A DNA stretch of 64,000 nt, taken from contig NC_086386.1 of NCBI RefSeq assembly GCF_036588685.1, positions 51,584,001 through 51,648,000 of the forward strand, given 5' to 3'. Origin of the DNA: Mytilus trossulus. Taxonomy: Eukaryota. Made by a program: the position numbers and the translations under genes. The notes under the pieces were generated by a model. The model searched no databases. It was not told where the DNA came from and worked only from the letters and a program-made list of their open reading frames with translations. Of the stretch, positions 4,026-37,974 are shown one piece after another; position 1 is the first letter of the stretch, and each line of letters begins with the position of its first letter.

Positions 4026-4851
4026 AAAAAAATGGTACCGTTAATTTTATGAATGTGATTAACATTGTATTGTAAAAAAAAGAAATTTAAAACCATTGAA
4101 TTTGCCAATTTTTTTTTCAGAGAATGTCACTTATAGCGATTGTCTATATTGTTCTTGTTGTAAGTATGGGTCAATGAAATTGTTAATTTCACAAAATATA
4201 ACGTTGTGATATCGATTTTTTTCGGTGACGATTTTAATTACCGAAATTTGTGTTTCTTTGAAGAACATACCACTTCCCAAACTTGCATTGTTTTGCGACC
4301 TACGTGTACCTTTTTTACGAATAAAATGTACCAATCAGTTATGTTAGATACAGAGTTACCAATTACAAAGCGAATGGAAAAGCATATTAGATTTGATTTT
4401 ATAACTTCAATGATTCTTTCTATACTGAACTGATTTTGAAATGTTAACCGACCTTACGGTAACTCTCACCATTAAATTATATCCTAAACGCGTTTATATT
4501 TGTAAACTGTCTAGCAGGAGACGGTGTGGTCGAAGTGTAAAGGACATGTTTTTCATCAATATGGAAAAGGTGTTAAAACTAAGTACAGATAATTTAAAAA
4601 AAAACAGGGATGTTTAAAATTATTATTGTTGATTATTGATCAGTTGATTATTATAAAAAAAAATGTACTTTTTATTATGTTTACGGAAAAAACAGGTAGA
4701 TGCTTTGAAATAGCCTTTTACGTTTGTTCATATACAAAAGTATGTCGATTATAAATTAAGATTTTGTTTTCTTTCTTCAAACTTATTAAACTGTTATCGA
4801 CATTTCTTTCAAGCTTTTAACGTTAGATCATCTATCATTTCATTTTTACAG

Positions 4852-5020
4852 AAATTGTACCTAACAGCAGCATTTCAAATTAGGTGCCCTGTTCCCTTAG
4901 AAAGACATTTTAGAAGTATGGCATTATGTGCAGATGCTTCAAACTACACATGCTTGTTTGATGAAGACCAAATGTCTTATAATGAGAGCTGTTCGATTAA
5001 ATTTGACTTTCAAAGACCAG
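4852..5020 (+). CDS. Exon, N-terminal Cys-rich ectodomain
   Basis: tttacag|...CCAG|gtgag; KLYLTAAFQIRCPVPLERHFRSMALCADASNYTCLFDEDQMSYNESCSIKFDFQRP(G); N-glycosylation sequons NYT and NES. Confidence 0.8.
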
Positions 5021-5841
5021 GTGAGCAGCTATACAAGGCACATCACAAATTAAAAACACGAAAAAGTGAATAACCTTATTAACAAGAATTTAAATACGCC
5101 AGAAAACTTTAGTTTTCAAAATATTACTTTGTTGATCGCTTTGATTTTTTTTTAATTTGCCAAGACTAAACACCGTTTGCAGTTGTTGTTTTCAAGCCAT
5201 GCCAATATTTTCTAAAGCAAAACACCTTTCAACTCAGTGACGTCTTTTTGAAGAGATGAAGTAACCCCTGTTGATATTCCTGTTTCACAATAGCAACCGA
5301 TGTCAACATTGACTCAACAGATAATGTGACGTTTATTATTGTCGCATTGTGATCTGTTTATCAAGAACTCTTAAGAAAAAAGCATAAATATATATATATA
5401 TACATGATATATGTATGATAAAACACAAATGAGTTTATTTGTAAATGTTTATATAGTGGCTTAAAAACACTACTACCATATTTACAATACAACTATTTAC
5501 ATTTTACGTGGACGAAGCGATAGTTTATCTGCATATCTCTTAATCAGTAACGTTGAAACGGAACTGTTTGAAATCGAAGGAATTACAAATATGCAGACAC
5601 GTGAAGAGCTATATTACCTATATGTACATTTAACGAAACGAGACATTAAAGCTATGTTAATTTTTAAAATATGAATGCGAAAAAATCATTTTGAAAATCC
5701 TTTCCGTACCGAAGTTGCTACCAGAGATCGAAAAATACCCGCTGGTGAAAACACTTTTAACTCTTGTAGTTTTGAGCCACTACATGCATTTATTGTATTA
5801 AAACGGTTTAATATATGCTTATGTTTTTCAACGTCCTTTAG

Positions 5842-6144
5842 GTTATAGAGTTACCTTTCGCACGAATCTGAACGGCATATCTTGCCCACCTGATCTGTAT
5901 CAACCACTCGTTTTTTTATCCAACGAATCCAGTAATTGTGAGCTTAAGAAATCGTTTTGCAGAAACGAGGGTCAACTATTATCATGGAATGGAACAAATA
6001 AAATGGACAGACAATGTCGATGTAATCATGTCGAAGGATATACATTTGTGGGTAACCCGAAAGATGCATGCTCTTGTATTCCAACAGAAGACGATTGTTC
6101 CTGCTATCGCAAACAATGTTCTAAGAACAGCATTATCCCTCCGG
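5842..6144 (+). CDS. Exon, TNFR-like cysteine-rich domain (missed by the ORF track)
   Basis: Open phase-1/phase-1 exon: YRVTFRTNLNGISCPPDLYQPLVFLSNESSNCELKKSFCRNEGQLLSWNGTNKMDRQCRCNHVEGYTFVGNPKDACSCIPTEDDCSCYRKQCSKNSIIPP. The C..G......GT...D..C pattern resembles a TNFR CRD. A clear paralog lies at 37189-37485. Confidence 0.85.
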
Positions 6145-6894
6145 GTTGGTATATAAACTAAACTCCTCATCAAAATTACTCTTTTTATTGATAGATATTG
6201 GTCAAACGAGGCAGTTTAATTGAATAATTGCTGCTTCCAATAACAAGTTACTTTAGCTTAATATCTGTTTGTAATATAATTACGAATACGGATAGTGTGT
6301 TATTGAAATTGGCTATTACTATCGTGACTGAATTACGGATTTTGTTTTTAAATTAATTAATATATCTTCCATATTAAATGCTCAGTTTTAATTTTACCGT
6401 TTTGCTTTTTTTTGCATTTGTTTGGGTCGCATTGGTATTGTTAGTTCTTTAATTTCAAAAACATTTAAGAATTGTGGACATGAAACATCCATGATCTGTT
6501 TTCGACAAGTGAATTGTGTACCGTTAATGTTATGATTATATGCTAAATATTTTTGTCCAATCAAGGCGTCAAACTAGTAAAGGATCGTCAGTGAAGTAAG
6601 AATTATAAAAAAATCAAAATCATTAAACCAACGTTGAAGAACTTGGATGTTGATTAAATCAAACGTAAAAAAATAAACAAATGCATAGACATGAGGGACC
6701 TCGACAAATAAGAAAACAATAGATTTTCATGATAAACGGTTGATTTTGATTTAGAGTTAAACCATAAAAACGAATCCCTTATAGTATTGTGAGAAAAGGA
6801 TATTATAAACCTGTAAGTTGCACCAAAAATATCAAAAGGTTTAGTACCACTGATGGATCTTTTGAAGATGAATAGAACACTCGTATTATAAACA

Positions 6895-9075
6895 TGATAA
6901 AGTTATTTGTCCGCATCAAACTGACCATTTTAGCATGTAATTATGTAAATGTATATAGCCGCATAGTAAATGAGTTATATTTTTATGTATAGATGGATAG
7001 TATAAAACGAATCATAGCAATTTTGGAACATAATGAATAACAAATTTTGTTTGCAACACTTTATAGTACCAGCATGTTCTCTTTTATTCAAACTAACAAA
7101 TTTCAGTAGTTTTTATACCTCATACTGTCTCGTATAACACAATTATTTGTCCGCATCAACTAGAACTGGCCATATTTGAACTTACTTAAGTGAATCTTAT
7201 AGTCGCATAGTAAATCAGTAATATTTTCTGTAATGATGGATTTGATGGATTGTATAAAAAAAGATATCAATATTGGAACATAATAACTACAAAAAAAAAT
7301 TCTGAGTAAAATAAATAAGTTTTATTTTTATGTACAGAAGGATTGTATAAAGCTAATCATAGCAATTATGGAACATACTGACTAACAAATTTTGTTTGCA
7401 TCAATTAAGTGTGTCAGCATGTCCTCTTTTATTCAAACTATTGAATCCTAAACAAATTTCAGTAGTTTTTATACCTCAGACTGACTCGTATAACACAATT
7501 ATTTGTCCGCATCAACTAGAACTGACCATATTTGAACTTAATTAGGTGAATCTTATAGTCGCATAGTAAATCAGTAATATTTTCTGTAATGATGGATTTG
7601 ATGGATTGTATAAAACTAATCATAGCAATTTTGAAACATAATGAGTATTCTAACCCATTTTGTTGGCATCAATTAAAAGTGCCAGCATGTCCTCTTTTTA
7701 TTCAAACTATTAAATCGTAAACAAATTGCGGTGGTTCTCGTACCTATTATATTGATATTTGAACATGATGACTACAAAACAATTTCTGATTCAATTAAGA
7801 GTACCAGACTAGTATTTCCTTTTGTTATTCAAAATATTGAATTGTAAACAATTTTCAGTAGTTTTTATACCTTAGAATGACTCGTATCATAACATTATTT
7901 GTCAGCATCAACCTAAACTGACCATTTTAGGATTTTATTATGTAAATCTATATAGCCGCATAGTAAATAAGTAATATTTTTATGTAAGGATGGATTGTAA
8001 AAAACTAATCATAGCAATTTTGGAACATAATGACTAACAAATTTTGTTTGCATCATCTATGAGTGGAAGCTTGTCCTCTTTTTATTCAAACTATAGAATC
8101 GTAAACAAATTTCAGTTGTTCTCATACCTCAGACTGACTCGCAAAGTAAATCAGGAACATTTTCTGTAATGATGGATTTCATGGATTGTATAAAACTAAT
8201 CATAGCGTAGCAATATTGAAACATATTAACAACAAAACAAAATCTGCATCAATTTAGAATGCCACTATGTCCTCTTTTTATTCAAAATATTGAGTCGTAC
8301 ACAAATTTTAGTAGTTTGCATACCTCAGACTGACTCGTAAAACTAAATTGTTTGTTCGCATCAACCAAAACTGACCATATTTTGCACAGTGACTTTATTA
8401 TGTAATCTTTGTAGTAGCATAGTAAATCAGAATAGTTTTCTTCGTAAGGATGGATATTAAAAAAAAAGTAAAGCAATATTGGAACATAATGATTACAAAA
8501 CAATTTCTGCATCAACTTAAAGTACCAGCATATTCTATTTTTATTCAAAATATTTAATCGTTAACAATTTTCAGTAGTTTTCATACCTAATAATGTATTT
8601 TAATATAATTATTTATCCGCATCAACTAAATCTGATCATATTAGCACTTCATCATGCATATCTATATAGCCACATAGCAAATCAGTTATATTTTCATGTA
8701 AGGATGGATTGTATAATACAAAAAATAGCAATATTGGAACAACATGACTAAAACAGTTTGTTTGCATCAATGTAGAGTGCATACAAGACCTTTCTATTCA
8801 AACTATTGAATCGTAAACAAATTTCAGCAGTTTTTATACCTCAGACTGATTCGTTTAACAAAATCATTTGTCCGCATCAACCATAAGTGACCATATTTGA
8901 ACTTTATTATGATAATCTCATGTGTTTTATTGTTTGTCTTTTTGTCTTCTTTCGTTTTTAGCCAGGTGTTGTCAGTTTATTTTCGATTTCTGAGTTTGAC
9001 TGTCCCCTTGGTATCTTTCGTCCCTCTTTTATTGTCGCATAGTAAATCTGTTATATATTCTGTAATGACGGATAT
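6895..9075. repeat. Degenerate intronic tandem repeat/satellite, ~240-260 bp unit with partial units
   Basis: Motif atttgtccgcatcaa recurs near 6905, 7145, 7501, 7896, 8350, 8611 and 8866, together with gatggattgtataaaa and ttattcaaacta blocks. Confidence 0.85.
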
Positions 9076-9732
9076 ATTAGATGATATGATCTAATAAGTT
9101 TAGTTACAACCACTTTGTCGATTCCACTTGTGGTGGAGTTTTTTTCCTCGAAGATTGTCCCAGCTCAGTGGTCGGCACTGTGCGTTTGCATGAATTATCA
9201 TTGGTTAGGTCTTATTCATAAATCAACTGTTTTGAAACAAAAAAATAAAAAATCTCGAAAATATATTTTTTCTTCTTCTCAGGAATAGATAAAAATTTGA
9301 AATTGAAACAAATATACATGTTTTTCAATGAGATATTATGTGAACGTAATATATAACATGATATGTATCATAAAATACCAACTTTAATTGAAAGTGAAAC
9401 ATTGGATTTTGAAAAAAAGGACTTTGGCATATAAGCTGACAGGGAAATAGAAAGTAATATACATATACACAGTTTGATCGACGTGGATCTACCATGCCAG
9501 TAATCACTTTGAAGTATTAAGCTGAAGTAACAACAGCAGGACTAGCTTCTATAGAGTCGTGCGTGCATGAAGATGTGTTCTGCCTCATTATATCAGTTCA
9601 CGAGAAGAAGGGTGGAGTTTAGACTTCATTATAGCTTTACAACCCCATCATTTATCATAATACCAAATTCACTCTGTTTTTTTTATATACATTATGAAAA
9701 CATATAACACATTTCAATTCGTTATCTTGTAG

Positions 9733-9832
9733 ATTATCAATGTATTGACAAATTTACGTCGTCAGAGAATTTTACTTGTTCATTGATTCCTGATCTACCG
9801 CAAGATATTATAACTGTCGTCTATAAAATACA
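9733..9832 (+). CDS. Exon, end of Cys-rich region and stalk
   Basis: ttgtag|AT TAT CAA TGT...CA|gtaagt; (D)YQCIDKFTSSENFTCSLIPDLPQDIITVVYKI. Same phases (1 to 2) and YQC start as paralog exon 38504-38573. Confidence 0.75.
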
Positions 9833-11987
9833 GTAAGTTGAAGGTGTTAAAAAAAGCCCGATAAGGGTAAGTTACATTTTTTTCTTTCAAGTTATAGATG
9901 AAACTCTTTTAACGAAAGAACTCTTACTTAAATGTTTTATACTGATGTTATATATCCAAGATAGAAATAGTAATCGATTTTAAAAATTTGACATACATTG
10001 TGGTTCCAATTTTACGTTTTGATCAGAATAGATTGACTTCAAACAACTGTTTATGGCAGGATGTTGCTACAATTTCTCATTTCCAACGTTTCTCTTCCCT
10101 GTTCCAACTGCACACTTCCCTTTTGAAAGTTGTCATATATACAAGAGTTGCAGCTGAGAATTGTCAACGTAGAACTGATTAATGGCAAGTCTGGCAAAGC
10201 AATTTTGACTTGCTTGGAATAAAATAAATTGAATATAAACAAGATGTAGTATGAATGTCAATGAGACAACTCTCCATGAAATGCCCAATGTATTAAAAGT
10301 AAACAATAATAGGATAAAGTCTTCAACACAGAGCCTTTGCCAACAAACAAACAACAACCGCTAAACAACAGGAAAATGAAGTTGAAACTAATTAATATCA
10401 ATTTGGAACTGATTAATATCAATATCCAACTGATTAATGTCAACATGGTCAAGCTGGAACTAAGGAACGCGAAAATTGAATGGAGAAATGTAAACCAGGA
10501 AGTTATGAATGTCGTAATAAAAACCTAACTTAATTTAAGGTTATCAACTGTTTGTGAAAATTTGAATATATATGGTAACTTATATGCATGTAACTACATA
10601 TCTTTTTTATGTGTAATGTCGATATTTGTCGATGTTTTTACAGAGTATCCAATGTGACTGTTTCCAGTAATAATACATACACTAATAATATACATAGAGG
10701 CAAGTACAATGTATATACATGCTTGATCTTGTTGAATTGGTATTTTAACATAAGGATAAGTTTTAATATGCTCCCGCACTGACCGATTTTTAAAATTTTT
10801 TATATGAAGCATTATTCATATGAAACCTCTTTATTTCAAACTTTTAGAAAATTCTGTTCTTTTACGTTAAGATATATTAGTCAAGTCCAAAATGAAAAGA
10901 AAATGAAAAGAAATGAAAATCAACTCATTATAAGCATACAAGTATTTCATTGTGTAGAAAAGGGTAGATTTAACCGTTTCATAGATAACTACACATCTTA
11001 CCCGTATGAATGTCTTAAAAAATGTCTTTCATATTTGCAACAATGAAGTAACAAAGCACACAGATATAACGTTGTCTTCTTTCTTTGGTAGTTGGAACAT
11101 ATGTATTTTAGTATTTTAATTTAGTATTTCTTATATGAAATTTTCTAAAAGTAAAACAACTTGAAAGTTGCTGGAAAATTTTGTTTAAACTATTAACAGA
11201 AAATGTAGTTAAGGCATTCAAAAGTAATCAACAATTCGACCTTTAGCTTTAAAGATTTAAATCATTTTATTTATAAAACAAAAACGATTTTTAAACAGTA
11301 ACAGAAGGGCCACAACAATTCTAAAAAGAGAAAATATACAGGGAAATAGATGATACATTAAATGACGTCTTTCTTCTAAACCAATAAGATTTTGAATGTA
11401 TACAGCTTGATATTTTAGCCTGAATTGCATTACATGTTCTATAATTTTTTATTGGCTTTAAATTGGTGCGAATTCTCTCAGATCTGTACAACTTGATTTT
11501 TGGTATGGGGGTATATTAGTACTTTTCCACGTCCACTTTTGGTTTTTGTAAGATGTATTTCTCTTTGTATCCATCTGATTAGTAAAGCGGCCTTTTAATC
11601 TGTTTTTATTTTATAGTTTGTTCTTCTGTTGTATTGTTATATCGCTGTACATGTTAGATGGAGTATTAAAGCCTTCAAACAAGTTTAACGCCACCATATT
11701 TGGAAATGCTTGTCTCATTTCAGGTGTTGTCATTTCTTGTTGTAAACATGTTTGTGTTCTTTATTATGTAAAGAAACTAGGCCATTAGTTTTCTTGTTTA
11801 ACTTGTGTTACATTTGTCTTTTGGGGGCCTTTTAAGCTGACTATGTGGTATGGTTTTTGTTCATTGTAGAAGGCCATCCTGTGACCTATTTGTTAAACTC
11901 TGTGTCATTTTGGTGTCTTGTGGAGTGTTATCGCATTTGCAAACATACCACATTTTCTTATTTGTGTGTTCAAACACTGAAAACAAG

Positions 11988-12073
11988 GTCACAAAATGAT
12001 GAACTTGTGACAATCCAGTATGCAGATAGTGTTTCTCATCAACTGAACATTGATGCAGACTCTGTTTTCTCTT
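11988..12073 (+). CDS. Candidate stalk linker exon
   Basis: The only phase-2 to phase-1 open segment I noticed: SQNDELVTIQYADSVSHQLNIDADSVFS, donor gtatgt. The acceptor (aacaag) is weak and lies next to a SINE-like tail. Confidence 0.3.
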
Positions 12074-13432
12074 GTATGTTTTATTAAGAGAAATTTATTA
12101 CCGTATATAGACTGTGATTTAATGTCAATTTAGTGTACCTTTACTGTTTTATTTCAATGAATATTTAGTGTAACTCAATATTCAGTGCTTTGTACAAATG
12201 ACAATTTACAACTATTTTAATAAGTTTATATTTCAATTTTCAATTGATATAATTTTCTTGTATATGTTCATGTTTTTTCATCTAAATAGTTTCAAATGAT
12301 AAGAAATAGCACTTCAAACGATTTTTGTGTTTTTGAATATTATTAACTTAAAATTCACTCTTTGATTATTTTATCAAATATTGCAACTGAAATTAATCTT
12401 TTTTTTATTTTCAAAAAGATTAACATGGATTCACCCTGATTCGTTAGTTAAGTGTTGGTATAACATAATCTTGAATATTCCCGATATTTACATAAAAATT
12501 CGGGGAACACGTACCTCACATTTCACTGTTTTACATGTACCTATATAATTTAAAATGTAGAAATGGCCAGAATGAACCGATAAAACAGGTTATAACTCTG
12601 CTCGGTTTATATTTACGGAGAACAAAGTCCGGGTGTCAATATCATCTTACAGGTCCATGTTTAACGCATTGACTGAGTAAAAGTCCTAAATTTCTATACT
12701 AGTATAACATAATTATGTAAATAATGTATTAGAAAAATTACGTTCGATGGTCTCTCTGTGTAATTTTTAATTGTATTTTACAAGAATTTTCTTTTCTGAT
12801 GCGTCGCCTTCTCCGTGGTTGTTATGTATGACGTCACGACGTCATAAATCTAAATAAAGTTACATTTTCATAATAACAATCAATATACGTATTAATAGAA
12901 ACATATCGTCAATATATAATAAGAATAAAAAAAATGCGTAAGGTACGTAAACTAACCTTTAAACACCTGGTCGTCAAATCCAATGAAAGCTACACCATAT
13001 ATAATATTGTGTAATAAGCACTATAAACAAAACAAGTTGTATCAACAAAGAAAACAAAATGGTAAATAGACGCTCATGATAAAAAATAAAACACACAAAT
13101 CCCCAAAAAAAGACCATAGCACAACACCACCACAACGTTATGTTCAAATACCGAGCCATGCACAAAGGATATAATCCAAATTGACAAAACAGTACAAGTT
13201 AAAAGTTAAAACTATATTAAGACGCCTATAGAGAACATCATTACATGTATAATGACAAACAACGTTGATAATTATAATCAATACCATTGTGTATCATTGG
13301 TGAAGTTAATTCAGAAGATTTATCAACAAAGACTTGTATCTCCCTATAATTTGTTTTGAAAATAACACATGTTCTTTGACATGATCTTGGTTCATCAACT
13401 TCATGCCCATACACTTGTGACGTTTTGTGAAG

Positions 13433-13838
13433 TTGAAATCATCCATTCGTAAATTTTACGGACGCCATCACGAGTTGGTTGACCGTTATGGAATAACCGT
13501 TTCACAAATGATATCGGATATGTTTCTTACGTCGTAACTACACTCCCCTTCCCTTTCATGAATTTGACCTACCGAATTAGACTATTTACCGGATTTGTAA
13601 TCACATAAGCAACACGACGGGTACCGCATGTGGAGCAGGATCTGCTTACCCTTCCGGAGCACCTGAGATCACCCCTAGTTTTTGGTGGGGTTCGTGTTGT
13701 TTATTCTTTAGTTTTCTATGTTGTGTCATGTGTACTATTGTTTTTTTGTTTGTCTTTTTCATTTTTAGCCATGGCGTTGTCAGTTTGTTTTAGATTTACG
13801 AGTTTGACTGTCCCTTTGGTATCTTTCGTCCCTCTTTT
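13433..13838 (+). mobile_element. 3' end of a Penelope-like (Naiad-type) element: RT C-terminus plus 3' repeat
   Basis: Encodes LKSSIRKFYGRHHELVDRYGITVSQMISDMF, homologous to 39575-39700. It is followed by a repeat ending gagtttgactgtccc..ggtatctttcgtccctctttt, also seen at ~8915-9030, 25434-25800, 26895-27310, 30781-30972 and 48860-49045. Confidence 0.8.
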
Positions 13839-14039
13839 GTAACGTCTGAGTGGCATTTGCAAGCTATTGACTACCAACTTAGTTTAAAAATGTGTATCCC
13901 TTTGAGTAGGTGAATGTATTATATTGCTGCTAGGGTTTGGTACATTAATAATTTCAATATTAAAGTATTATACTATGTCATAAATTTTGTTATTGGAATT
14001 GAGACAACCGCTATTATCGACTTAAATGTGTTTCTTAGA

Positions 14040-14200
14040 AAAAACACGAGGCAATGTTGTTTCATTAATTCCTAGATGTGCAAGCATTTATAGAAACCAT
14101 TCAGCAAAGTTTGAACTGTTGTTGGAAAGTACATGATCAATATATTTTAATGTAAAATAAAATGATCTAGCTTCTTTCAACTTTTTATTGTTGAAAAATC
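14040..14200 (-). mobile_element. Highly degenerate Penelope-like RT fragment
   Basis: ARSFYFTLKYIDHVLSNNSSNFAEW resembles FNFTFRYIDDVLSLNN at ~40030. Confidence 0.55.
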
Positions 14201-15382
14201 TCCAACTCATGTAAACATTGGAAAAAACGATAAAACATATTACAACCTTATTTAGTAGGAGTACACAAAAATGTACCTGTTTCGGAATATTATGCATTTA
14301 AATTGACAATAAATAACCTAAAAGATGAAAAGCATAAGTCAGTATTGATCAACTAACGTATATTATCAGATTATTACATCTTATATTACAGAGTTTTTGT
14401 CAATAGATATGTGTATCGCAACCTCGTTTACATTATGTACCATTCTTTGTTTAATAGATAAGGCTTGATACAAATACTCATCAGATGAACCAGCTTTTAA
14501 ATATTTCGAAACATATTCAAAAATCCAAATGATAAAAAGACAAACATTTGATGGAAAATAAATGAATTCTAAACAGAGGACAGTCAAATATTGATTGAAA
14601 TCATTTCCAACTTCACCTTTAGATGTTATATTGGTATGGGCTTTCTTGGCCTCACGGTCATAAAACTTTCGAGCATGATTTTTGAACTCAGACTCGAAAA
14701 TCAACCAATCAAATTGCTGGATTTTGTGCTTCGATCATGATTTTTGTGCTCCAAGCAGTTAGCAAAGTTTTATGCCTTCAAGGCTTGGATACGGTAAATT
14801 TAACAAAAAAAATTCGGCTACTACAATATAAAGCGTTATTTCTTTGCATACGATCATATTAAGAGAATAACTAAACCGAAAGGAATTGCAATTTTGTGTT
14901 TAAATAGAAAGAATATAACGAGAGGCCGCCATATAAATGTGCACTGATTTATTTCTACCTTATAACAATAAAATATATGTGTTTTAGTCTTTTTTTAAAG
15001 TGTTAAATGTACAGCCATAATTATCACATAACTGGATAAAGTAAATGATAAAAGCTTTGAAAGAGAGAATGCTACTGGTAAAGAATGGAGAGGCCGGATT
15101 AAAAATGTTGACGTACTATGATTTTTGTTTTTTTCCGATTGCCTATCCAAATATCTTCAAGTAGATATCGAGATATGAAACATCACTCTTAGTCGAAATA
15201 TTTGACTTCTTACGTCAAATTAATTAAATTATATTTTAATCTTAATCTTTTTTCTAAACAATATTCTACAACATCTGTTTATTGACGTATCATTATGTAT
15301 GTATCTAATATGTATTTGCAATGTCAATTTTATTGACTGGCTACATGTATCTCGAAATGCCAATTACTCGTAATAATTTCAG

Positions 15383-15499
15383 GTGTTGAAAGAAAAGAGA
15401 AGGTAGCCTTTAGAATCCTGTTATGTTTGATAACTTTTGTTATTATGCTGTCGGTGATATTTTCAAGTATTGCCATTATCAAAAACGACAATAGTACAG
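15383..15499 (+). CDS. Transmembrane exon
   Basis: tttcag|GT...ACAG|gtatgt; VERKEKVAFRILLCLITFVIMLSVIFSSIAIIKNDNST, with a ~22-aa hydrophobic run; phase 1 to 1. Confidence 0.75.
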
Positions 15500-16849
15500 G
15501 TATGTATTTTCTTTTTCTTTCCCTTTAACTGAAGACAACGGATATTCCAATTGTTGAAGATCAATCGTATTATTGCCTGCAATTGCTTTAATTCACTTCA
15601 CTTTTGAATTTAGGTTGGTAGACTATTGTAGATATCTCATTTGCAATGACTTTATATATTCTCGCTTTTATGAGCCGTGTTTTTTTTATATATAAAGATA
15701 TGAACAAGCGTTGAACTTTCTCCAGCTGATTAAGATTTAAATGTGTGTAACGGTAAAGATATATCTGTCATAGATACAGACTTAGAACGACTGATGAACT
15801 ATGACAAATTGCCACCTATTAAGTTAAAGTTATCAAATCAATTAAGAATCACTTATAGTTATTATATATAATTGCACAGGCTTGTATTCAAGACATAATA
15901 TATATACAAAAGAAATTAAAAAAAAATAATATAATAAAAAATACAAAATATAAAATTGGCGTTACTGGCAACATGCTAGCAATTGATATGTATTTAAAAA
16001 ATAAAAAAAAAAGAATACATATCTCAATTAAATGCACATATTCGAACATTTATCGCGGCACTTGGTTCCTTGACTTCAAATAACTTACACAATATACTTT
16101 AAGGAGAAAGTCACGAGACACTTTAGTATAATCAAACAGAAACATAACTCGTAGAGTATTGAATGAAACCTCAAACATTGTGAACCTAATAGCAAAGTGA
16201 GCCTTTGAAAAAGAGAGTATTTACAAGAGCTCGAAGCATACTTCAAAGAACAATATGTTACTTCAAAATACCTCTATACGAGTGGCATGTTGAGCGCTGG
16301 CCCATTCCATGTCAAACATATGTTATTCAAGTATACCCACCCTTTTAGTCTATCTAATTAATTTTAATACCTGCAAGTTGAGCGCTAGCCAAGCCCATGC
16401 TTAGATGGTATTGACTCACTTTGCAACCAGAGACGGATAACCTCGAGTGAAAAAAACATTTGCACACTATAACATGTATCCAAAAGAACTGTCAAATGGA
16501 AAAACAAATGAATCTGTCACCCGACGAGAGGGCTGCCTAATTATCCATTTTATTCAGGGCTGCCTGAGAACTCAGGTAATAATTTTGTGAGAAATAAAGA
16601 AATGATGAAATTCATTATTACATTGCCCAAACAAAATGCTACACATGCTGCCCTTGTAACGCATTGAGTATCCCCAAAAATTTTCCGAGACAGTGGTTGT
16701 GCCAAATTGAAAATTGTCACTAATTTACATGTTTTCAAATAATAAGGGCAAAATTTACAAAAATACGCAGAAATCGATAGTCTACTTAAATATATAAGAA
16801 TAAAAATAACGAATCACTAATTTTTCTTCTTACAAAGTTTGAATCATAA

Positions 16850-17760
16850 TTATTTACACATTTTCAACAGAGCTTTACGAATGTCAACTTCAGATGTTCT
16901 TATATAACGACTGTAGCAGTCAGATTTCCAACGTCCTAAAGTTTGAATTATATGATATTGGATACCATTATAACTGCAAGTTGTGGCTGCTCCTATTTGG
17001 AAAGAATGTCCACTATATTTATCGGCATTTAAACCCAAGTGTGAAAGAATTGTTTTCAATTTGTCTATAAATAACGATCGGGGTAAAGCTAAATTACTAC
17101 TGTCTACCAATAGCGGATTATTATCTGTTGCACCGTTCATTTTTCTGGATGTTATATATTTTGACAACTGAACATATGGACAAATATTTTTATAAGTTTT
17201 AAATAGTTTAATGATTACTCCATGATGCCTTCAAAATTAACTTGACAATCAGAACAAATACTACATCATCCAAAGTTAAATTCAAAGCTGAATCGGATGA
17301 CTGTTTGCATGTAAATTCAGAACAACGCAGGAAACCGAAAAAACCTATAACAGCTGCAGTCAAAATCTAAATGCGGATCGAAAATACTTTTCTGTAAACG
17401 TTGGTAAATCTGTTGAAGCACACTATAGGTAATCGGTAGTTTTTGTCGCACACTTTTGTTTTCAGTTTTCCTTATACCATTCAGAATATTTTGTAAACGT
17501 ATCAAAGACTTACCTACATTATCTACCAAAGGATTGACACTACAATTGCAATAGAAAAATGACCTACTCCAGCCAGATATAACTTGATAGTAGAATATTT
17601 CAAACCTAACACTGACTGACAATATGATACAAAGCAAGTTGATATATCCTCGGAAATATTAGACATTTCATTTCCAACATTTTTTCCTTCGAATTGAGAG
17701 GTACGAAATTTAAGAAAACACTTATACCGAGATGTGTATACATCTCTTGTAGCACTATTA
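16850..17760 (-). pseudogene. DIRS tyrosine recombinase, fragmented
   Basis: STIKLYLAGV, KLPIT, FFGFLRCSEFT, YSGHSFQIGAAT (HxxR changed to HxxQ), LGRWKSDCYSRYIR. Confidence 0.9.
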
Positions 17761-17859
17761 ATGATTTTACTCCACAAATTATTAATCACAGAAGTCAATT
17801 CCACAGAATTTCTGAGTGGGACGGGCAGTGACAAGGTTCCACTGATGCTGTCGGACACA

Positions 17860-19150
17860 GTTGATGAAAACGATCCATCTGAAATCCAGAGAGAGCATCA
17901 GCTATAGTATTACAATTTCCGGCTACATGAGTACCGTGAATAATAAAATTATATTTTGCGGAACATTAATCTCATAATTTCTAATGATTTTGATCTTCCT
18001 TTCTTTATAATTAAAACTGTAGCCATATTATCATAGCAAAATAGGATACGCTTCCCTTGCCACTCAATACCCCATATAATAGCAGCAATTACAATCGCAT
18101 ATGATTTCATGTAAGCCAAAGACATTGATAATTCCTTATCTAATTTCATTTCTACGGGCCATAAAGCTTGAAACCATCGATTTTTGAAATAAGCCCCAAA
18201 TCCCGCGGTGGACGCAGCGTCAGTATATAAATCAAAATCAGACGCATTTACTATATTATCATCAATAAAGAAAGAAATTCCATTCCACTGATCTAAGAAC
18301 GTATGCCACAATGATAAATCATTTCTACAACTAGCATTTTAAAGTGACATGGTGATGAAGTACTTTAACAGAGTGAGCTATGTTAAGTAGATAAGATATA
18401 AACGATCTCACAGGAATAATATAATGACTCTCATTGCTAAATTCAAATGACCCAATAAACTTAACATCTCACGTTTTGTACATGTTTTGTGACTAAGGAA
18501 AAACAATAGGAATTCCTTAATTCGACAAAATTTATCTTCGGGTAATCTAGCTTCAATACGAATAGTGTCCAATATTTTACCCAAGTATTCGTTGCATATT
18601 GCTTGAATGACACCCAAATGCTAATCTAGTGTAAAAGTAATACATATTTTCCCATCTGAATCAATATAAATGCCATAAACTCGGATGAATAGGGATTATT
18701 TTAAATGCATTAGATACGTCCAATTTACAACATCTTAAGGCAAAACCGTATTCTTTGATAAATTTAATGGCATCATCGATTTAACTATACGAAAGCAAAA
18801 AATCTTCTTTGTTGATGATGTCGTTGACACTACTACGCTCATCACTATTGTGAGGTGCAGATAAATCAAGTATAAGTCTGTTCTTTTTAGAATATTCACC
18901 TTTAACAATGCCAACAGGACTAACCCTGTATATATGGGCATATAACACAATTATTGTCTAACTCTGATTTGACTAATCCGGAAACGTCATCTTGACATTT
19001 TGTAGTAGAAAGCAGGTTTTTACATTCTAAAATCTTTTCCGGTAGAGATGTCAATTGACCCCTTAAGGAGTTACGTAACCCGTTAATTAATGAATTTACG
19101 AAATATCTATCAGGATGTCAACTTATCTACATTGATTGGTGTTGTGGCAT
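17860..19150 (-). pseudogene. DIRS reverse transcriptase/RNase H, fragmented
   Basis: YLGKILDT..EARLPEDK, LSLLGHLN, WNGISFF, LYTDAASTAGFG, DNMATV..IKKGRSKS, HVAGNCNTIADALS. Confidence 0.9.
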
Positions 19151-19175
19151 GCATTAACAAATTATCATTATCTAG

Positions 19176-20380
19176 TCATATATTTGCTTGTTTGGTTGTT
19201 TTTGGTACACTTGTAGAGGATTTAATATGAGTTGACGATTTCATATTCATGTCAACATGAGCATAGCGGCACGCGGATCCCCTGTAGCATTTACCAGCGA
19301 GATAATAGTTGCAAAGTATTTTCACTTTGTGGAATAGCTTTGGTCTTCCGTATGGGTCAATATCGGCTGATTGTGGTTCAGAATACGGTGTTGTAGGATT
19401 GCGCTTTTGTACGGAATGGTTGTTTTTGCCCTGCGAAGTATCAGATAAATAACACATTTCAGTGCTATGCAATGAACGTCCACATACGCCACATGTAAAA
19501 ATGTATTGATAACTCTCCCTAAGAAAACTGAAAAAAAAAAGTTTCTAATCTTTAATTGACCAGTCAAAGGTCAAACCTTTTGTTAATTTAATTGCCGCAA
19601 CTTTCTGAGCGAAGGCCTTATGATATTCATAAAAAATGTTACCTTTAAAATTCGTCACCATTTTTATGATATCTTGCAAAAACATGTCAAGTTCTACTCG
19701 ACGATCTTCGAATTCGCACACACTGTTTTTGTGAATGTTAAATGCCTCTATGTATTCATGGATTGATTGGTCACGCTGCAGGCGATGATCTTTTGGCTTA
19801 AGAAGGAGTAGAGATCCATCTGCCTCTATTTGCTGAATATCACTTTGATTTTCATTTACAGGAATAAGCAATGAAACTAAATTAATATACTTGCCTTCTT
19901 TTATATTTTATCGCTGGGTTTGTGACACTGTTTGTATGTGCGGAAACATACCAGCAGACATTTTCCCGGAAGCACTATATCCCTGTCTTTCGATTAATTG
20001 AGATGACGATTGAATTTGAGTACCAGTATGCAATATACCATTCCCGGTAGCATTCTTTTGAAGATCCATTACTGTTTTAAGAATTAATTTCTCCTTTACT
20101 TTTAACTGTTTCGGTCAGCGATTTAACATTGGCAGATAGTTTACGAATAGTGTTCTTTGATATGATATCATTGACTTCCTCTGTGTCAACAGTTGTTTGC
20201 ACATTAGCAGCAGACATAGGTTGACGATTAGAATGTAACAAAGCTTGTAATTGTGTTAGCTAAATGAAACAGGAGCATTAACTTCAATCACATTTAGTTC
20301 TGCTATTAATTCCTCTTTTAATTTTTGCTAGAATCATTTGAATCGACAACATAAGCGGATTTTCGTTTTGGCGAAGCCAT
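19176..20380 (-). pseudogene. DIRS gag-like region with C-x8-C-x5-C-x3-H zinc finger
   Basis: KPKDHRLQRD..I.EYIEAF..FYEYHKAF..DWSIKD and CNYYLAGKCYRGSACRYAH; ATG near 20380. Confidence 0.75.
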
Positions 20381-21583
20381 TTTCAATAATTACAAATAAA
20401 AATATTACATAAAACAAACATGTTTATCTAATCCAAATAAAAATTACAAATGCAACTTAAATACATTTCTAATGTACCCTAGACAAGTAAGAGAGTGGTT
20501 ACTTAAGATTGACATGCCTTAAGCTTATATCAAACACGATAGACTATTAACTTGCGGTCAGACAATTCCCAGACATCCAAAAATAAGTCAAGACTAAGAG
20601 ATAAAGTAAACAAATGACATCTGCAAGGAATTAAACACTTACATAAACTTGAGTTAATGAACATTAATACGCATATATGAAAGGATTAAACGTTACGCAA
20701 AGAGTATATTCTAATGTTATTGTTATCTAATTATTAAAACAGTGCATGCAAACTCATCAAGCTGAGTCCTGTATGCATAATTTTTAAGCAAAACAGTAAC
20801 AGTGCTTGACCGTATTTCCGATAAAAACAACATTTTATTTCGTTATTATTGTTCACAAGCTAACTAGCTTTTGGGTGAGTTGCCGAAATTTATCGAGTTG
20901 TGGCATTAATAAACAATCAACATAGACCATACGAAGAACGTGATGAAAAGGTAAATGAATTGATCTATGATATTTTATATTTGTTCCATGATTCCCATTG
21001 GATGATAGAACATTTCCTAAACAGTTGTTTTGATTATTTAAAGTCTGTTATTTTAGAACTATTATTGAATCTCCATTGGTTGTTCAGTTGTTTTCTATTA
21101 TCGCATTTACCCCCACTTTTACAGCGTGTGGTGCATTATGGTGATAGAGGTTCTGTTGAAAGTTCACGTTGTTAAGATCGCGGAATATGGATCATTATCT
21201 TCGAAATAGTATAAAGAAAGACAATAATTAAATAGTAGCACATTAAAGGGGCACTAGCTGCCAAATTCATGTTCACCGATTATAATCAATATGATTTATA
21301 AAAATGTAAAATACTTATCCAAACTATTAAAAGTCTAAATAAAACAATAAACAAGGCACAGGCAAGCAAATACGTAGCTTAGTTTCGTGTGAATTTGAGT
21401 CTAGGCGCCATCTAACTATTCATCGAGTTGGCCTCTATAGTCATTGGATGACCATATAAGCGATGTTAACATAAATATACATATAAATAGATTTAACAAA
21501 CACGCGATGTTGAATTTATCCTAACACTACTATATTAAGAATATCAACGTTGTGTTTGTCTAAACAAAGAAATTTATTTTCAG

Positions 21584-22770
21584 GATTTGGTAATAACAAA
21601 ATGATAATAACAGAACAGGTAGAACGGGACAACAAAACAGAACTACCTGCAGAAACTAACATTATAACAAAAGCAATTGAAAAACTAGATGCAACAAATT
21701 TTGTGCTACTGTGGGGAAAACCAGGTTGTGGTAAAACAAGAACCCTGTGCAAAATTGCCGAGTATTACCAAACAAGTCTTGGATATCGACTTATTACTTG
21801 CCATAAACCGTCTGACATATTTGCTCAAGAATGTGTTACAGAGAAAATAATATTCGTCATCGATGACATTTTTGGTAGATTTGTCTTTTCTCACGAAAAA
21901 GTCCTAATATTGAAAAAATTAGGAAAACGAATTCAACAGTTCATCAAGGAAAATCCTGTGAAACTAATAATGACATGCTCCTCTGTCGCATTCAGAAATG
22001 ACTGTCTACAAGAACTCGATTTATTTACTAATAATACATTTGAATTACCTGAAACTAGTTTGATAGACAATAAAAACATGGATTCAGGTGAAATTTTAGG
22101 TATGGTAGAACATAACAGGAATTCTAATTATGAAGCATATTGTTCTCTTTTTATCTTAATACTTAAACAAGGATGCATTCATGAATCAGATTTGACGAGT
22201 GATGACGATAATATGTTAAATAAACTGATAGGCAATGTATGTTATCAGTTGAACATTGAAGTCTCAGGACAGTGGTTTACGAAAAATTTAAATTCATTAA
22301 TGGGAACTTTCATTAAGAAAGAAAATATGTTATTTGCAATTACACAAACTTCGGTTTTTGAAGTGCTTGCTGTCTATTTTGGACAGGAACTTCAACCATT
22401 ACTGCTTCAATTTGCGGACCCAGATTTAATTACACAGCATTGTTGTTTTACATCATGTTCCGATCTTGATAGAAATGGAACGTTTCGTATACAGGTAGAC
22501 AAAGAAAATGAAGAATTGTATTTTCTCAGAATAAAAGATAAACTACAACGTAAAGACCTGACCGAAGTATTTTCTGTCCCACAGATGAAATCAGCATCCT
22601 ATCGCAAGAAGTTTGATGTTTTCTTAAAAAATCTTGAACCAGATTTATTGAAAGAAATTAATAATTCAACATGCAGATTAAGAACCGACTATGATGCAAC
22701 TGCTTTAATATTGACAAGTAGATATGTCAATATTTCCAAAATATTTATTGAAGCCAAAAACTTAAATTAA
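21584..22770 (+). CDS. Terminal exon: STAND-class P-loop NTPase (nSTAND3-like) with helical region and a partial ankyrin-like tail
   Basis: Longest ORF in the window (21550..22770). Acceptor ttttcag ends at 21583, phase 1. Walker A GKPGCGKT, Walker B IFVIDDIFG, PSDI motif, YCSL helix motif. AATAAA at 22792. Confidence 0.85.
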
Positions 22771-30709: not shown

Positions 30710-32473
30710 GAATCCAAAAAGAAATTAAAAAGGTCAAATAAAGTACGAAATACACACTTTATACTTATTTAATGATCATGAGGAGCCGGGTCTGCTTACC
30801 CATCCGGAGCCCCTGATATCACCCAACGTTTTTGTTGGGGTTCCTGTTCCTTATTTTTTAGTTTTCTATGTTATGTCTTCTGTACTATTGTTGTCTTTTT
30901 TTTTATTTTTGGCCATGGTATTGTCAATCTATGAGTTTGACTGTCCATCTTGTGTCTTTCGTCCCTCTTTTCTGAAATACTTACCATAAGTTATGAATAA
31001 CAAAGAGTAATTAAGACTTCAATCGACAAACTTTGGACGTTAATTGTCCAATAACAAGATATAACAAGAAAACAGAAAAGGTTACAATTTGATATTGACT
31101 ATGTATTTGCCACCCTCCTTTCAAGACAAAAACCAAAACAAAAAACAAACAGATGTAGAAAGTAACTGAACATAAATATAGCAAATCCACTAAACTTAAA
31201 AATCTGAAGAGTCCATGGTTAAACTGAAAAACATGGGGACTGAACAAAATAATTTCATTGAAGCGATTATATAACAGAGATGCAGTATATACTATTACTG
31301 CATGGTAAACATTCAGAGAAACAGAAGAAGAAAAACAAATAAAACTTTTCATCAGAATAGTGTTATTTTTCTATTTTTCCTAATTTATTGATTATTTTTA
31401 CAGATTAAATATAAAGTATTTAAAATCAATTGAAATGTTAATGAAATTCCTGTATCTTTTAAAAAATCAAAAGAAAAAACGCATGTCAAATACGTAATAT
31501 CTGAAATCATGTATATGGTATAATACCATAAAAAAGAAGATGCTGTTTCCTCACACCTTCGAACATTTGTTGGCAAAGTAGTAGATAAAAGAATAAAAGA
31601 TAAAACACAAAAACAAAAATTTCCACTAAAGCGATAGACTTGTTTGCTTTTCCCCCCAGAAAATTCGTTACTTAAATACTACTTATAGTAAATACACATT
31701 TTTTCACAGATTTAAGTTTGATTATCATATTTTTTAATATAATTTTCATCTTCCACTTGTATGAACCATTTTGAAAATAGTTCCGGATCAAAATGTCAAC
31801 GCGACTGAAACAAAAAGTTAAAATCACAAAAATACTTCATTCAGAGGAAAATCAAAAACTGAATGTCCCTTTTTCAATGGCAAAATCAAAAGGTTGAACA
31901 CATCAAACGAATGGAGAACAACTGTTATATTCCTGATTCAGTATAGGCATTTTCTTATGTAGAAAATGGTGGACTGAACCTGGATTTATATCTAACTAGA
32001 TACATCGAATTCCGTTAAATTCTAAATAAGAAAATGCCTGTACCAAGTTCAGTATTTGTGTGATTTTTCTATTTATTTAACTCAATATACATCATAATAA
32101 ATTATGCCTTCTAATCAAACAGCAACTGATTTGATAATTTTGACTTGATTAAGATTTAAAAATGTGCCGTATCGAATGACATTTTATCTAGTCACAACGT
32201 TGGTTACTAGGAATGCACATTGTTTATACTCAGAATAGAAAACCGTAGCATAATGTAAAAGAAATGAAGAAAACATAATGAATTTAAAACCCACAATCAA
32301 TTATGGCAATATGTCTTTTAACGTTAGTTGTATGTGGTGTTTTACAACGTTTTATAGTAGTAAACGTATTTAGGTAGACACTTGATACCTAATTATTTTT
32401 TGTTCTCATTTTTATAGTTGACATATATGTTATAATGTTATTTTTAAAAAGAAATTCCTTTTACAATACTTAC

Positions 32474-35190: not shown

Positions 35191-37188
35191 GTTCTAACTC
35201 TTCTTATCATTTGTTTTTCCTTTTGAAAGGTAAACACAAAGTTACCTTGGTTTAACATTTTTTCAAGAATAAAAGTGATGTTCTGATCCATTAATAAAGA
35301 ATTAATCATTTAATGTTGCATTAAGGATTGATTAATTTCTTCACATATGCGTGCACATTTGATAAAATGTATGTTTAAGTGGATTAATACGTTTTTTGGT
35401 CAACCAATAGACCATCAGCATATACGAAACCTTCGATTGCAATTGAATGGTAAATGTGCTGCAGAATATAGTTGTTTTATAAAATCCAAAGCGCAATTTT
35501 TAATGATTCCGGAACTTCAATTTACCTAGGTTTAAAATGATAGAAAGAGGAAACATGTACAACATTTAATTGAACATCAAGGTAAAATCTTGTTTGCAGT
35601 GAATTTGCACACAATATAGATTTGTTTTGTAGATATGATGCTTTAACAGGAGTGATCAGTACGGAATCACTTTCATAATACAATTGCACTTCTTTCTTAA
35701 ATTGTCATTCAAATTCAAAATGTCAGATATTAATGTCATAGTTCTGTTTTCTGGATCAAAACATTTTAATGTCAGCCCGAATGAGTCAATAACACTATGT
35801 TTGTGACACCATATAAACTTCACAACAGACGTTTCTGAACAGGAGTGTCCAGATTTTATCATACATCAGCATATTTATCGTAGTACAGTTAACATAACTT
35901 ATGAGAATCATACAAGACAAGTTTCTTTTTGTTAAGTAAGGAGCCTATAACATGTGATACTTTTTATTTCGTGATCAGATTTTAATTTCAGTGTATGCAG
36001 AGTGCTCTCGATTAAATGTGACAGAAACTAGATTAAAAGTCAATCGACCAATCAAGCGAATTTTTCTATGATTGATTTAAATCTATTGATTGAAATCAAT
36101 CAACCTAAATGACGTTATTGAACAATATATCATTACTGTGGTAAAGACCCATACACATTTTGAGATAGGACATGCACCATTTCAAACGTCCTGTATACAT
36201 CAATGAAAATGAGTTTTCCAGATATGAAAAATTAAGTTTTACTGCTGATGTTACATATGAGCCTTCTAATAATCGGATTTCAATTCTAAAGTCAGTTGCG
36301 TAACATTAAATTAAATTGGAAGCCACCTATCAGTTTTATATTACAATCATGTCTTGAAAACAAATAATATCATCATATTGATTCATATTTGCATTTAAAA
36401 CGTGTGGCATTCCCGTACGGTTTGGAGGTTTCAATGCCGCCGTACACTTTTATGATTATGTCACCGAACAATTTTTATAAACTCTTACATAAAAACAACT
36501 AGTGTTCTGGTGGTCTAATGACCTATATTGACCTGAATAATAATTTTAAGACTCAGTTCGCTAATGCGTAGAGTGTCAATGTATGTCTTACGTCATTTTT
36601 TCACATAAGTGCTATCATTTATTTGTTTCAGTGAAAAACATCGATGAAACATTGTTTTTCCCATCACTCACGGTATCACAGAAGCAACGGACGGTGGTAC
36701 ACATTGTGAATGTGTGACCTCGGCTTAAAATATTTAAGATTATCACAAATCACAGGACCTTGATCATTGTTGATTACACTTTTTAACAAATTTACAAACG
36801 TAAAAGAATGCCGTTTTGTTTTTTTATTTTGCCATGTGATTATGGACTTTCCAAATTGATTTTCCTCTGAGTTCAGTATTTTTGTGATTTTACTTTTTGC
36901 TTGACTAAGGTTTGATAGAAATGTCTTAAAATTGATACACGTTGACACATGTACTATAATTCTTTTTTCTCTAAGTTGTTTTTAATCTTTTGTGTCTTAG
37001 AGATGTCATGTTTCGAACGCGAGCCGTAATCGGCAATGTGTGAACGCAGTATTACATATAAAAAATCCGTTACCACGACAACTATCAGATATCGGCAAAT
37101 AAGCCTCTTGTTTTTCGCCGAATTCGTTTTATTTTATTTTGCATCAACAGTATATGCAAATGTAAAAAGTACACCACATTTTTTGCAG

Positions 37189-37485
37189 GGTATAAGGTTG
37201 TGGTTAGGGGTCATTTTGACATTAGAGTGTGTGTCTTAAACCGTTACCAGCCATTTTTGTTTCGGACAAACGGAAGCAGTGAATGTACATTTCAAAAATC
37301 ATTGTGCAGCGGAGAGGGTCAAATAACTGACCAATTTACCAGGAAAGATTCTACTTGCCGCTGTGATTATAGGAGAGGGTACTCCTTTATTATACAACCT
37401 AAGAATATCGCGCATTGTGTGCCTTCTGAGGAAGACTGTTCATGTTACAATAAACGTTGTGTTGGTGGATATATACTAAATGCAG
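37189..37485 (+). CDS. Exon of a second TNFR-like Cys-rich ectodomain paralog
   Basis: tttgcag|GG...GCAG|gtacat; YKVVVRGHFDIRVCVLNRYQPFLFRTNGSSECTFQKSLCSGEGQ..KDSTCRCDYRRGYSF..PKN...CVPSEEDCSCYNKRC. Cys spacing is collinear with 5842-6144. Confidence 0.8.
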
Positions 37486-37974
37486 GTACATCACCATAAA
37501 CATACAAATAGTTGAAACTTAGAACGCTAATGAGATAATTAAGAAACGTTAATGAAAAAAAATAAAAAATAAAAATGAATGTTTGCATTTTATATCCGGT
37601 TATTGATTATTTAATGAAAGAGTCGTTATTTCAATTTAGCGTTGTTGTAAATTCATTGGAAACATTGCCCACCAATACCCATCGCTCAATACAGTCATTT
37701 GGATTCTGATTAAAACAACTGTATTTACATTTTACTATACTTATGTTTTTCCAAATCATTTTGAAATACATGCACTTGAGAAACATGCTGCAGACAAGGA
37801 CAAGCAAACAAGACTTAAAATGGAGATGTCACCCGTTTCTCAGAAACTCATAACGCCATTCAGAAAACAAAAGAAGAAAAGTAAAAGAAATTGCTATATG
37901 CATAAGATGACTCGTCAAAGTATATATCCTTTCTCAAACTGTTTGTGTTAACAATTAAATACACCATGATTATA

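Follow-up and report, generated by a model that had tools for sequence, protein, structure and literature searches.

The locus described here raises the question of whether a STAND NTPase can be built directly into a cell-surface receptor. Switches of the STAND/NLR class are cytosolic sensors, and TNFR-type receptors signal via Death-fold or TRAF adaptors. We analyzed a stretch of 64,000 nucleotides (nt) of the mussel Mytilus trossulus, referred to below as the window, which lies on the chromosome-scale contig C14 (C14:51584001–51648000) of a 1.3-Gb assembly with 31% GC. To judge from its sequence, a chain of seven coding exons in this window most likely specifies, in this order, a signal peptide, a cysteine-rich ectodomain of ~165 amino acids (aa), a short N-glycosylated stalk, a transmembrane (TM) helix, a 37-aa linker, and an nSTAND3 NTPase with helical and winged-helix domains. 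We read the locus as the gene for a type I membrane protein of ~655 aa that would act as an outside-in STAND switch, and we put the probability of this reading at roughly 0.6. The predicted architecture itself, which had been put forward in a preliminary description of the window, is well supported by the conserved exon structure and by the homologues P0005 and P0163.

Exon chain and splice sites

Exon borders were drawn from homology to the proteins P0005, P0151, and P0157 together with inspection of the splice sites, and frame consistency was assessed by phase arithmetic across individually handled exons. The seven coding exons (Table 1) total 1968 nt, that is, 655 codons and a stop, with consistent phases (0, 1, 1, 2, 1, and 1 at the successive junctions) and no internal stop. 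The acceptors are AG throughout, and the donors are GT for all exons but exon D, which has GC. The GC-AG intron after exon D begins at window position 10700, and its donor, GAG|GCAAGT, is the consensus form for introns of this type.

The signal peptide is split between two exons, and its first half, MSLIAIVYIVLV, comes from the first coding exon; 8 of 12 residues match the N-terminus MALNAYVNIVLV of P0151/P0157. This exon is preceded by the acceptor ttttttttttcag, which implies a non-coding exon further upstream. By tblastn, exon A shares 73% identity with P0151 and 56% with P0005, and exon C is 82% identical to residues 170–203 of P0151; a homologue of exon C is also present in the paralogue described below. 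The V(T/S)VSSN motif of exon D recurs in P0157 and P0163. Exons A, B, and C together contribute 16 cysteines, and the ectodomain exons have seven N-x-S/T sequons between them when the stalk exon D is counted in.

The features named in the preliminary description, namely, the Cys-rich exons, the TM exon, and the NTPase exon with its GKPGCGKT motif and Walker B strand, all lie where it had placed them, but the start exon and exon D had escaped it. The direct junction from exon C to the TM exon that it had assumed (9832 to 15383) was rejected, as phase 2 meets phase 1 there and an immediate stop follows. Because this junction is out of frame without exon D, the 56-nt exon is needed as a bridge to hold the frame. 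Two other candidates were discarded: an alternative acceptor at 15393 was dropped after the conserved exon D had been discovered, and a start codon mutated to CAA at 4810, obtained by tblastn extension, was rejected when the separate start exon was found.

Table 1. Coding exons and NTPase motifs of the receptor-STAND gene (window positions)
Feature	Position	Strand	Length	Properties
e1, first coding exon	4121–4159	+	39 nt	ATG at 4124; encodes MSLIAIVYIVLV; donor GTAAGT, phase 0
Exon A, signal peptide end and first Cys-rich module	4852–5020	+		4 Cys, 2 sequons; phase 0 to 1
Exon B, core Cys-rich domain	5842–6144	+		10 Cys, 2 sequons; phase 1-1; donor G|GTTGGT
Exon C, final Cys pair (DYQCID...FTC) and stalk start	9733–9832	+		phase 1 to 2; donor CA|GTAAGT
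Exon D, glycosylated stalk (VSNVTVSSNNT...)	10644–10699	+	56 nt	2 sequons; phase 2 to 1; donor GAG|GCAAGT
TM exon	15383–15499	+	117 nt	phase 1-1; ag/gtatgt sites; single hydrophobic helix FRILLCLITFVIMLSVIFSSIAII; ends ...NDNSTG
NTPase exon	21584–22770	+	1187 nt, 394 codons	phase 1 acceptor ttattttcag|GA; stop 22768–22770
Walker A, GKPGCGKT	21715–21738	+		pattern GxxxxGK[ST]
Walker B strand, IIFVIDD	21847–21867	+		pattern hhhhDD

The TM exon and the intron that follows

The TM exon encodes a hydrophobic helix of 26 residues. When the 10.9 kb that separate exon D from the NTPase exon were scanned for hydrophobic exons flanked by splice sites in any phase, two candidates were obtained, and only the TM exon of Table 1 has the required phase 1-1. 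The TM segments of P0005 and P0163 end in N-x-T-(x)-G, comparable to the end of the window exon. With the same filters, a TM candidate was also obtained at a third locus, on C9, and none was obtained in two further members of the array described below. A juxtamembrane exon like that of the paralogue was sought in the intron between the TM and NTPase exons and was not found.

This intron holds, at 16850–19871 on the minus strand, a broken string of open reading frames (ORFs) that resembles a degenerate tyrosine-recombinase retroelement (DIRS/Ngaro-like). One ORF has a CCCH zinc finger (Pfam E = 1.5e-5), Phage_integrase is matched weakly (E = 0.11, motif ...GRWKS...Y...), and GC is locally raised to 0.34. 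Separately, a hydrophobic pseudo-ORF (...WGSCCL...FRF.SLTVPLVSFVPLL...) recurs at 8891–9091, 13581–13842, and 30729–30986 (+) and at the C9 locus (locC 18947–19135). It is probably a dispersed repeat of introns and intergenic DNA, and it yields false TM-exon candidates.

A paralogue and full-length homologues with the same architecture

A paralogue located 230 kb upstream on the same strand (C14:51365623–51377141) has the same order of exons, A, B, C, D, TM, and NTPase, at 41% identity to the window gene for the NTPase, 58% for exon B, and 66% for exon A. Its exon D is likewise 56 nt long and is followed by a GC-AG intron (donor CAG|GCAAGT, at C14:51369214), and its TM exon (C14:51371816–51371926) has phase 1-1. 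An extra juxtamembrane exon of 108 nt (C14:51372514–51372621) precedes its NTPase-ankyrin (ANK) exon. As far as sequence comparison can tell, a shared non-canonical donor and an equal length of exon D would be hard to explain unless splicing follows the proposed scheme. Kept despite protein identities of ~41–58%, the GC-AG intron that follows exon D is also a useful annotation marker for this gene family.

Two homologues carry the whole architecture. P0005 is a single ORF of 673 aa on a 2307-nt Logan contig and comprises a signal peptide, ectodomain, stalk, TM segment (216–234), linker, and nSTAND3 domain; because the genomic homologues have introns at the corresponding points, this contig must stem from spliced RNA or, with lower likelihood, from a retrocopy. 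P0163 (XP_052076994.1, isoform X1 of LOC127715008 of M. californianus, 1379 aa) comprises a signal peptide, ectodomain, TM segment, nSTAND3 domain, and ANK repeats. Its ectodomain matches the hidden Markov model of the family with an E-value of 8e-81, a VTVSSN stalk follows, and the TM segment ends in ...GNNTG; RefSeq carries it as an "uncharacterized protein". A single polypeptide running from signal peptide through ectodomain and TM helix to STAND domain is predicted in the window by the phase logic of the exons and is laid out likewise in P0005 and P0163. Furthermore, P0151 of M. coruscus and P0157 of M. galloprovincialis fuse the ectodomain exons with the orthologous NTPase exon.

The NTPase exon

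The NTPase exon encodes the 37-residue linker, the nSTAND3 P-loop NTPase, and a helical/winged-helix part, and it contains no repeat domain. The open frame at 21514–22767 matched Pfam nSTAND3 (PF20720) at profile positions 3–126 of 155 with 67.4 bits and an E-value of 1.6e-18, far above the curated cut-off of 27.2 bits, which bears out the initial assignment to this clade, and other P-loop families in Pfam scored weakly on the same frame. An in-frame stop lies 70 nt upstream of the acceptor. The nearest proteins are all from other mussels: the exon is 68% identical to P0151 over 99% of its length, 69% identical to P0152, and 56% identical to P0153/P0157 (M. galloprovincialis).

In an AlphaFold2 (AF2) model of the homologue P0005, which is 42–45% identical, the cytoplasmic part reached a predicted local distance difference test (pLDDT) score of ~90, and its best solved matches in Foldseek were Avs5, Avs4, SAMD9, NOD2, Dark, and NLRP3 (400–465 columns, E = 3e-7 to 4e-4). 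This homologue model suggests that the window protein, too, has the layout of NTPase core, helical part, and winged helix seen in Apaf-1, NLR, and Avs proteins. No Death domain was detected by Pfam in the cytoplasmic part, where nSTAND3 was the only family.

The encoded protein lacks the C-terminal superstructure-forming repeats that serve as the sensor of STAND proteins; such repeats are usual in the class without being required. The ORF ends at 22770, and tblastn detected nothing similar to ANK repeats downstream of the exon within the window. P0151, P0152, P0153/P0157, and P0001, at 55–69% identity, stop at the same position, also without ANK repeats, and the more distant P0002 and P0163 run on into long ANK arrays. 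The ANK-less C-terminus of several mussel proteins, together with the lack of any ANK remnant, therefore points to a conserved subfamily form and not to recent decay.

The ectodomain is probably TNFR-like in predicted fold

The label "TNFR-like" in the preliminary description agrees with the predicted fold and finds no counterpart at the level of sequence. When the four exons A to D were searched against Pfam, no family, TNFR_c6 included, was matched at E ≤ 10, and none was matched by the ectodomains of P0005, P0151, P0154, P0155, and P0163. A sequence-profile search of the PDB with a profile of 52 exon B copies gave no match at E ≤ 10, and an ESM Atlas search with the ectodomain gave only uncharacterized mollusc clusters.

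Exon B was modeled alone with AF2 from an alignment of 52 genomic copies. This model replaced a first one of the whole of P0005 (26 rows), in which the pLDDT of exon B was just 30–50, and it reached 74.5 overall and 81–88 over residues 30–90. In Foldseek, the top matches listed were all TNFRSF ectodomains or receptors of that family (E = 0.026–0.5, probability 0.99–1.0), including HVEM, CD40, TNFR1/2, 4-1BB, RANK, and DcR3, and the best match (E = 0.026, probability 1.0) had a TM-score of 0.51 and a root-mean-square deviation of 3.0 Å over 78 columns. VIA-align, which is independent of Foldseek, placed TNFRSF ectodomains in its top 21 ranks, with Z scores of 5.6–3.4, a range in which the tool warns of a merely common arrangement; the top chains were those of Fas, HVEM, 4-1BB, OX40, CrmE, CD27, TNFR1/2, DR5, RANK, OPG, DR6, and EDAR. 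The ectodomain is thus probably TNFR-like by predicted fold. Given the modest scores, and since AF2 may be drawn towards disulfide-rich folds that are already known, we describe it as TNFR-like in fold, homology unproven.

A tandem family of receptor-STAND genes

At least 150 open copies of exon B are present in the M. trossulus genome, many of them on C14, and the alignment of 52 copies has 12 invariant positions, including 8 cysteines. Cross-matching of coordinates showed that at least 19 loci pair an exon B with an nSTAND3 exon 6–29 kb downstream on the same strand: 15 on the plus strand of C14, three on its minus strand near 15 Mb, and one on C9. Approximately one such pair would be expected under independent placement, a comparison to be read with the fact that the pairs arose by tandem duplication and are not independent events. 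Between 51.37 and 52.63 Mb of C14, 14 of the 19 plus-strand copies belong to paired loci; the window gene stands within a 1.3-Mb tandem array, with at least 14 neighbours of the same layout, most of them ankyrin-tailed. At three further loci, exons A and B and an nSTAND3-ANK exon are collinear.

The window itself holds a second open copy of exon B at 37161–37493 (+), 40–53% identical to family members, and so a neighbouring receptor gene begins within it; no nSTAND3 exon follows this copy within the window. Another copy lies at C14:51649798, 1.8 kb past the window end.

The same ectodomain and TM helix also occur on other cytoplasmic parts, in proteins of M. edulis and M. californianus: P0154 carries a B-box-like zinc finger and a repeat region, P0155 a long low-complexity tail, and P0156 an Ig domain with a Roc-COR GTPase. 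This suggests that the ectodomain and TM helix form a shuffled receptor cassette. Conversely, in M. californianus, P0059 (XP_052075396.1, "ankyrin-2-like") joins the ligand-binding domain of Cys-loop receptors to a TM segment, nSTAND3, and ANK repeats, and P0033 (XP_052073626.1, "PP6 regulatory ankyrin repeat subunit B-like") joins a signal peptide and a short ectodomain to the same parts, indicating that membrane-anchored nSTAND3 proteins use several unrelated ectodomains.

Alternative products of the locus

Several observations weigh against the reading of the locus as a gene for a membrane-anchored switch. The charges that flank the TM segment (RKEK..R before it and a single K after it) break the positive-inside rule. 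The two closest annotated homologues, P0151 and P0157, lack the TM exon, and the junction from exon D to the NTPase exon is also in frame; either the 117-nt exon was missed in annotation or it is really skipped. Isoform X2 of LOC127715008 (P0173) is a cytosolic form: a short first exon of its own stands in place of the ectodomain and TM helix, and from the juxtamembrane region on it is identical to isoform X1. It makes a TM-less product plausible at the window locus too. The ~3-kb degenerate retroelement lies inside the intron between the TM and NTPase exons. No protein of 217–690 aa identical to the window NTPase exon is present in a protein collection in which the RefSeq set of M. trossulus is represented; the gene may therefore have gone without annotation, be expressed at a low level, or have been classed as a pseudogene. 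Finally, the encoded protein has no recognizable effector or sensor repeat, and the mechanism proposed below is one that we infer throughout. Three alternatives to this reading are considered.

If exon D were spliced directly to the NTPase exon in the main product, the locus would specify a soluble protein with a signal peptide and a lumenal or secreted NTPase. P0157 has precisely this chain, P0090 likewise lacks a TM segment, and the phase 1-1 of the TM exon permits its skipping. However, an exon of 117 nt is easily overlooked by automatic models. The TM exon is open with good splice sites both here and in the paralogue, at 41% identity, and P0005 and P0163 contain it. Moreover, an ATP-dependent STAND switch in the secretory lumen would have no functional rationale, and we consider this outcome very improbable.

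The second alternative is that the locus yields two products, one a short-tailed, decoy-like receptor consisting of the ectodomain and TM helix, the other a mainly cytosolic STAND protein made from an internal promoter or alternative first exon, with the fused mRNA rare or absent. Read-through of the donor at 15499 reaches a stop after nine codons, which would provide the short tail, and an ATG lies in frame six codons inside the NTPase exon. Isoform X2 has its own first exon. P0161 (XP_063416209.1, 748 aa), the RefSeq model of the M. trossulus paralogue, begins downstream of the TM exon, at the ATG that ends the 108-nt juxtamembrane exon, and leaves out both the ectodomain and the TM helix as well as a portion of the NTPase exon, just as had been anticipated for ORF-based annotation of such a gene. 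Even the repeated collinearity of exon B and nSTAND3 could stem from tandem duplication of a two-gene unit. On the other hand, both halves stand in one ORF in P0005 and P0163, and the phases agree at all junctions of the window gene, whose NTPase exon opens at a good acceptor with an in-frame stop shortly upstream. P0161 speaks for both sides, as it includes the upstream juxtamembrane exon, so that the NTPase exon of the paralogue is not a first exon. We therefore regard two separate products as unlikely. The isoforms modeled for LOC127715008 suggest that receptor and cytosolic forms may coexist.

Third, the locus could be the decaying pseudogene of an ankyrin-bearing receptor-STAND gene, which would have lost its sensor repeats and its expression and received a retroelement in its largest intron. 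The window gene has no ANK repeats, whereas most of its paralogues have them; the retroelement is present, and the annotated protein was not found. Against this, all seven exons are open and their splice sites intact in a genome whose 31% GC makes stops frequent, the ANK-less C-terminus is placed identically in the proteins listed above, and no ANK remnant lies downstream within the window. Decay is accordingly improbable, and the reading as a gene for a membrane-anchored receptor-STAND protein is retained.

Proposed mechanism and significance

Under the preferred reading of a type I membrane protein, an extracellular and probably multivalent ligand, such as a TNF-like trimer or a microbial surface, would cluster the ectodomains and thereby raise the local concentration of NTPase domains. 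The crowded domains would then oligomerize in a nucleotide-dependent manner at the inner face of the membrane. No Death-fold, TIR, or HEPN effector and no C-terminal repeat sensor is present in the predicted protein, and because the window copy has no effector domain, output would need partners: either it would co-assemble with nSTAND3 paralogues that bear an effector (HEPN, CARD, or ankyrin forms), or unknown adaptors would be involved. Alternatively, within the same frame, the window copy might play a regulatory or decoy role towards its ankyrin-bearing paralogues.

A broader picture can be offered tentatively, as a possibility that we hold with considerable doubt. Mussels may have built a modular family of surface receptors, in which a common cassette, the TNFR-like ectodomain present in at least 150 copies, is connected by one TM helix to any of several exchangeable switches in the cytoplasm, namely, nSTAND3, ankyrin-tailed or not (at least 19 loci), Ig with Roc-COR, and B-box with a propeller-like part. 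In the STAND members, the ectodomain would be the sensor, and clustering outside would directly nucleate an NLR-type oligomer inside, with no Death-fold adaptor; the ankyrin-less window copy would be the minimal form.

The family offers a natural system in which to ask whether extracellular clustering alone triggers STAND oligomerization, and it illustrates how domain shuffling lets invertebrates that lack adaptive immunity vary what they recognize at the cell surface. In current annotations, such genes are split or truncated and appear, for example, as "ankyrin repeat domain-containing protein 50-like", "DAPK", or "uncharacterized", and counts of bivalve immune repertoires consequently miss the receptor-STAND class.

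Comparison with known systems

No paper on this mussel receptor-STAND family was found in the literature. The earlier view that no characterized protein has this architecture was nonetheless overstated, in the light of AjNLRC4, the oyster receptor-like proteins, and the RefSeq entry XP_052076994.1. [quoted passage not shown] On the same partial text, it resembles the predicted mussel protein as a single-pass protein that joins an extracellular binding domain to a cytoplasmic STAND-class NTPase in an invertebrate immune context. It differs in that its NTPase is of the NACHT type instead of nSTAND3, in that an Ig domain takes the place of the TNFR-like Cys-rich fold, and in its phylum.

In the oyster Crassostrea virginica, an in silico study described an expansion of proteins with a Cys-rich ectodomain, a TM segment, a DED, a TRADD-N domain, and a variable part, whose modules can include STAND NTPases, ankyrins, and B-boxes, and proposed that they sense external stimuli (Kaur, Iyer, Burroughs, and Aravind, 2021, eLife; PMC8195603). 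Common to both bivalves are a lineage-specific expansion and a constant Cys-rich ectodomain and TM segment combined with variable intracellular immune modules. In the oyster proteins, however, the TM segment is separated from the variable part by a DED and an NCOA6-type TRADD-N module, whereas in the mussel protein only 37 residues lie between the TM helix and the NTPase; Pfam detected no DED or TRADD-N in the window exons, P0005, P0151, P0157, or P0163. The anthozoan NLRs with three to five N-terminal TM helices (PMC5094078) are likewise predicted membrane-bound STAND/NLR proteins of marine invertebrates, but they have a multi-pass anchor, no folded ectodomain, and a NACHT NTPase.

With the TNFRSF ectodomains (HVEM, CD40, Fas, 4-1BB, and TNFR1/2), the predicted mussel protein shares a type I topology and a Cys-rich, glycosylated ectodomain, and exon B is predicted to adopt a fold that aligns to a pair of successive cysteine-rich domains at 20–23% identity. 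Its cysteine spacing, however, has repeated C-x-C pairs that are untypical of TNFR_c6, and it has no death domain or TRAF motif. Its NTPase belongs to the same clade (PF20720) as the cytosolic nSTAND3-ankyrin proteins of molluscs and the bacterial Avs/AVAST proteins, Avs5 and Avs4 being the best solved matches, and by analogy, switching by oligomerization might be expected here too. Those proteins are soluble and have a C-terminal sensor and an N-terminal effector, whereas the mussel protein has an N-terminal anchor and ectodomain and neither effector nor repeats. The idea of a membrane-anchored STAND receptor is therefore already known from the sea cucumber, oyster, and anthozoan cases; what is new in mussels is the direct junction of a TNFR-like ectodomain, a TM helix, and nSTAND3 with no Death-fold adaptor between them, the size of the family, and its minimal ANK-less form.

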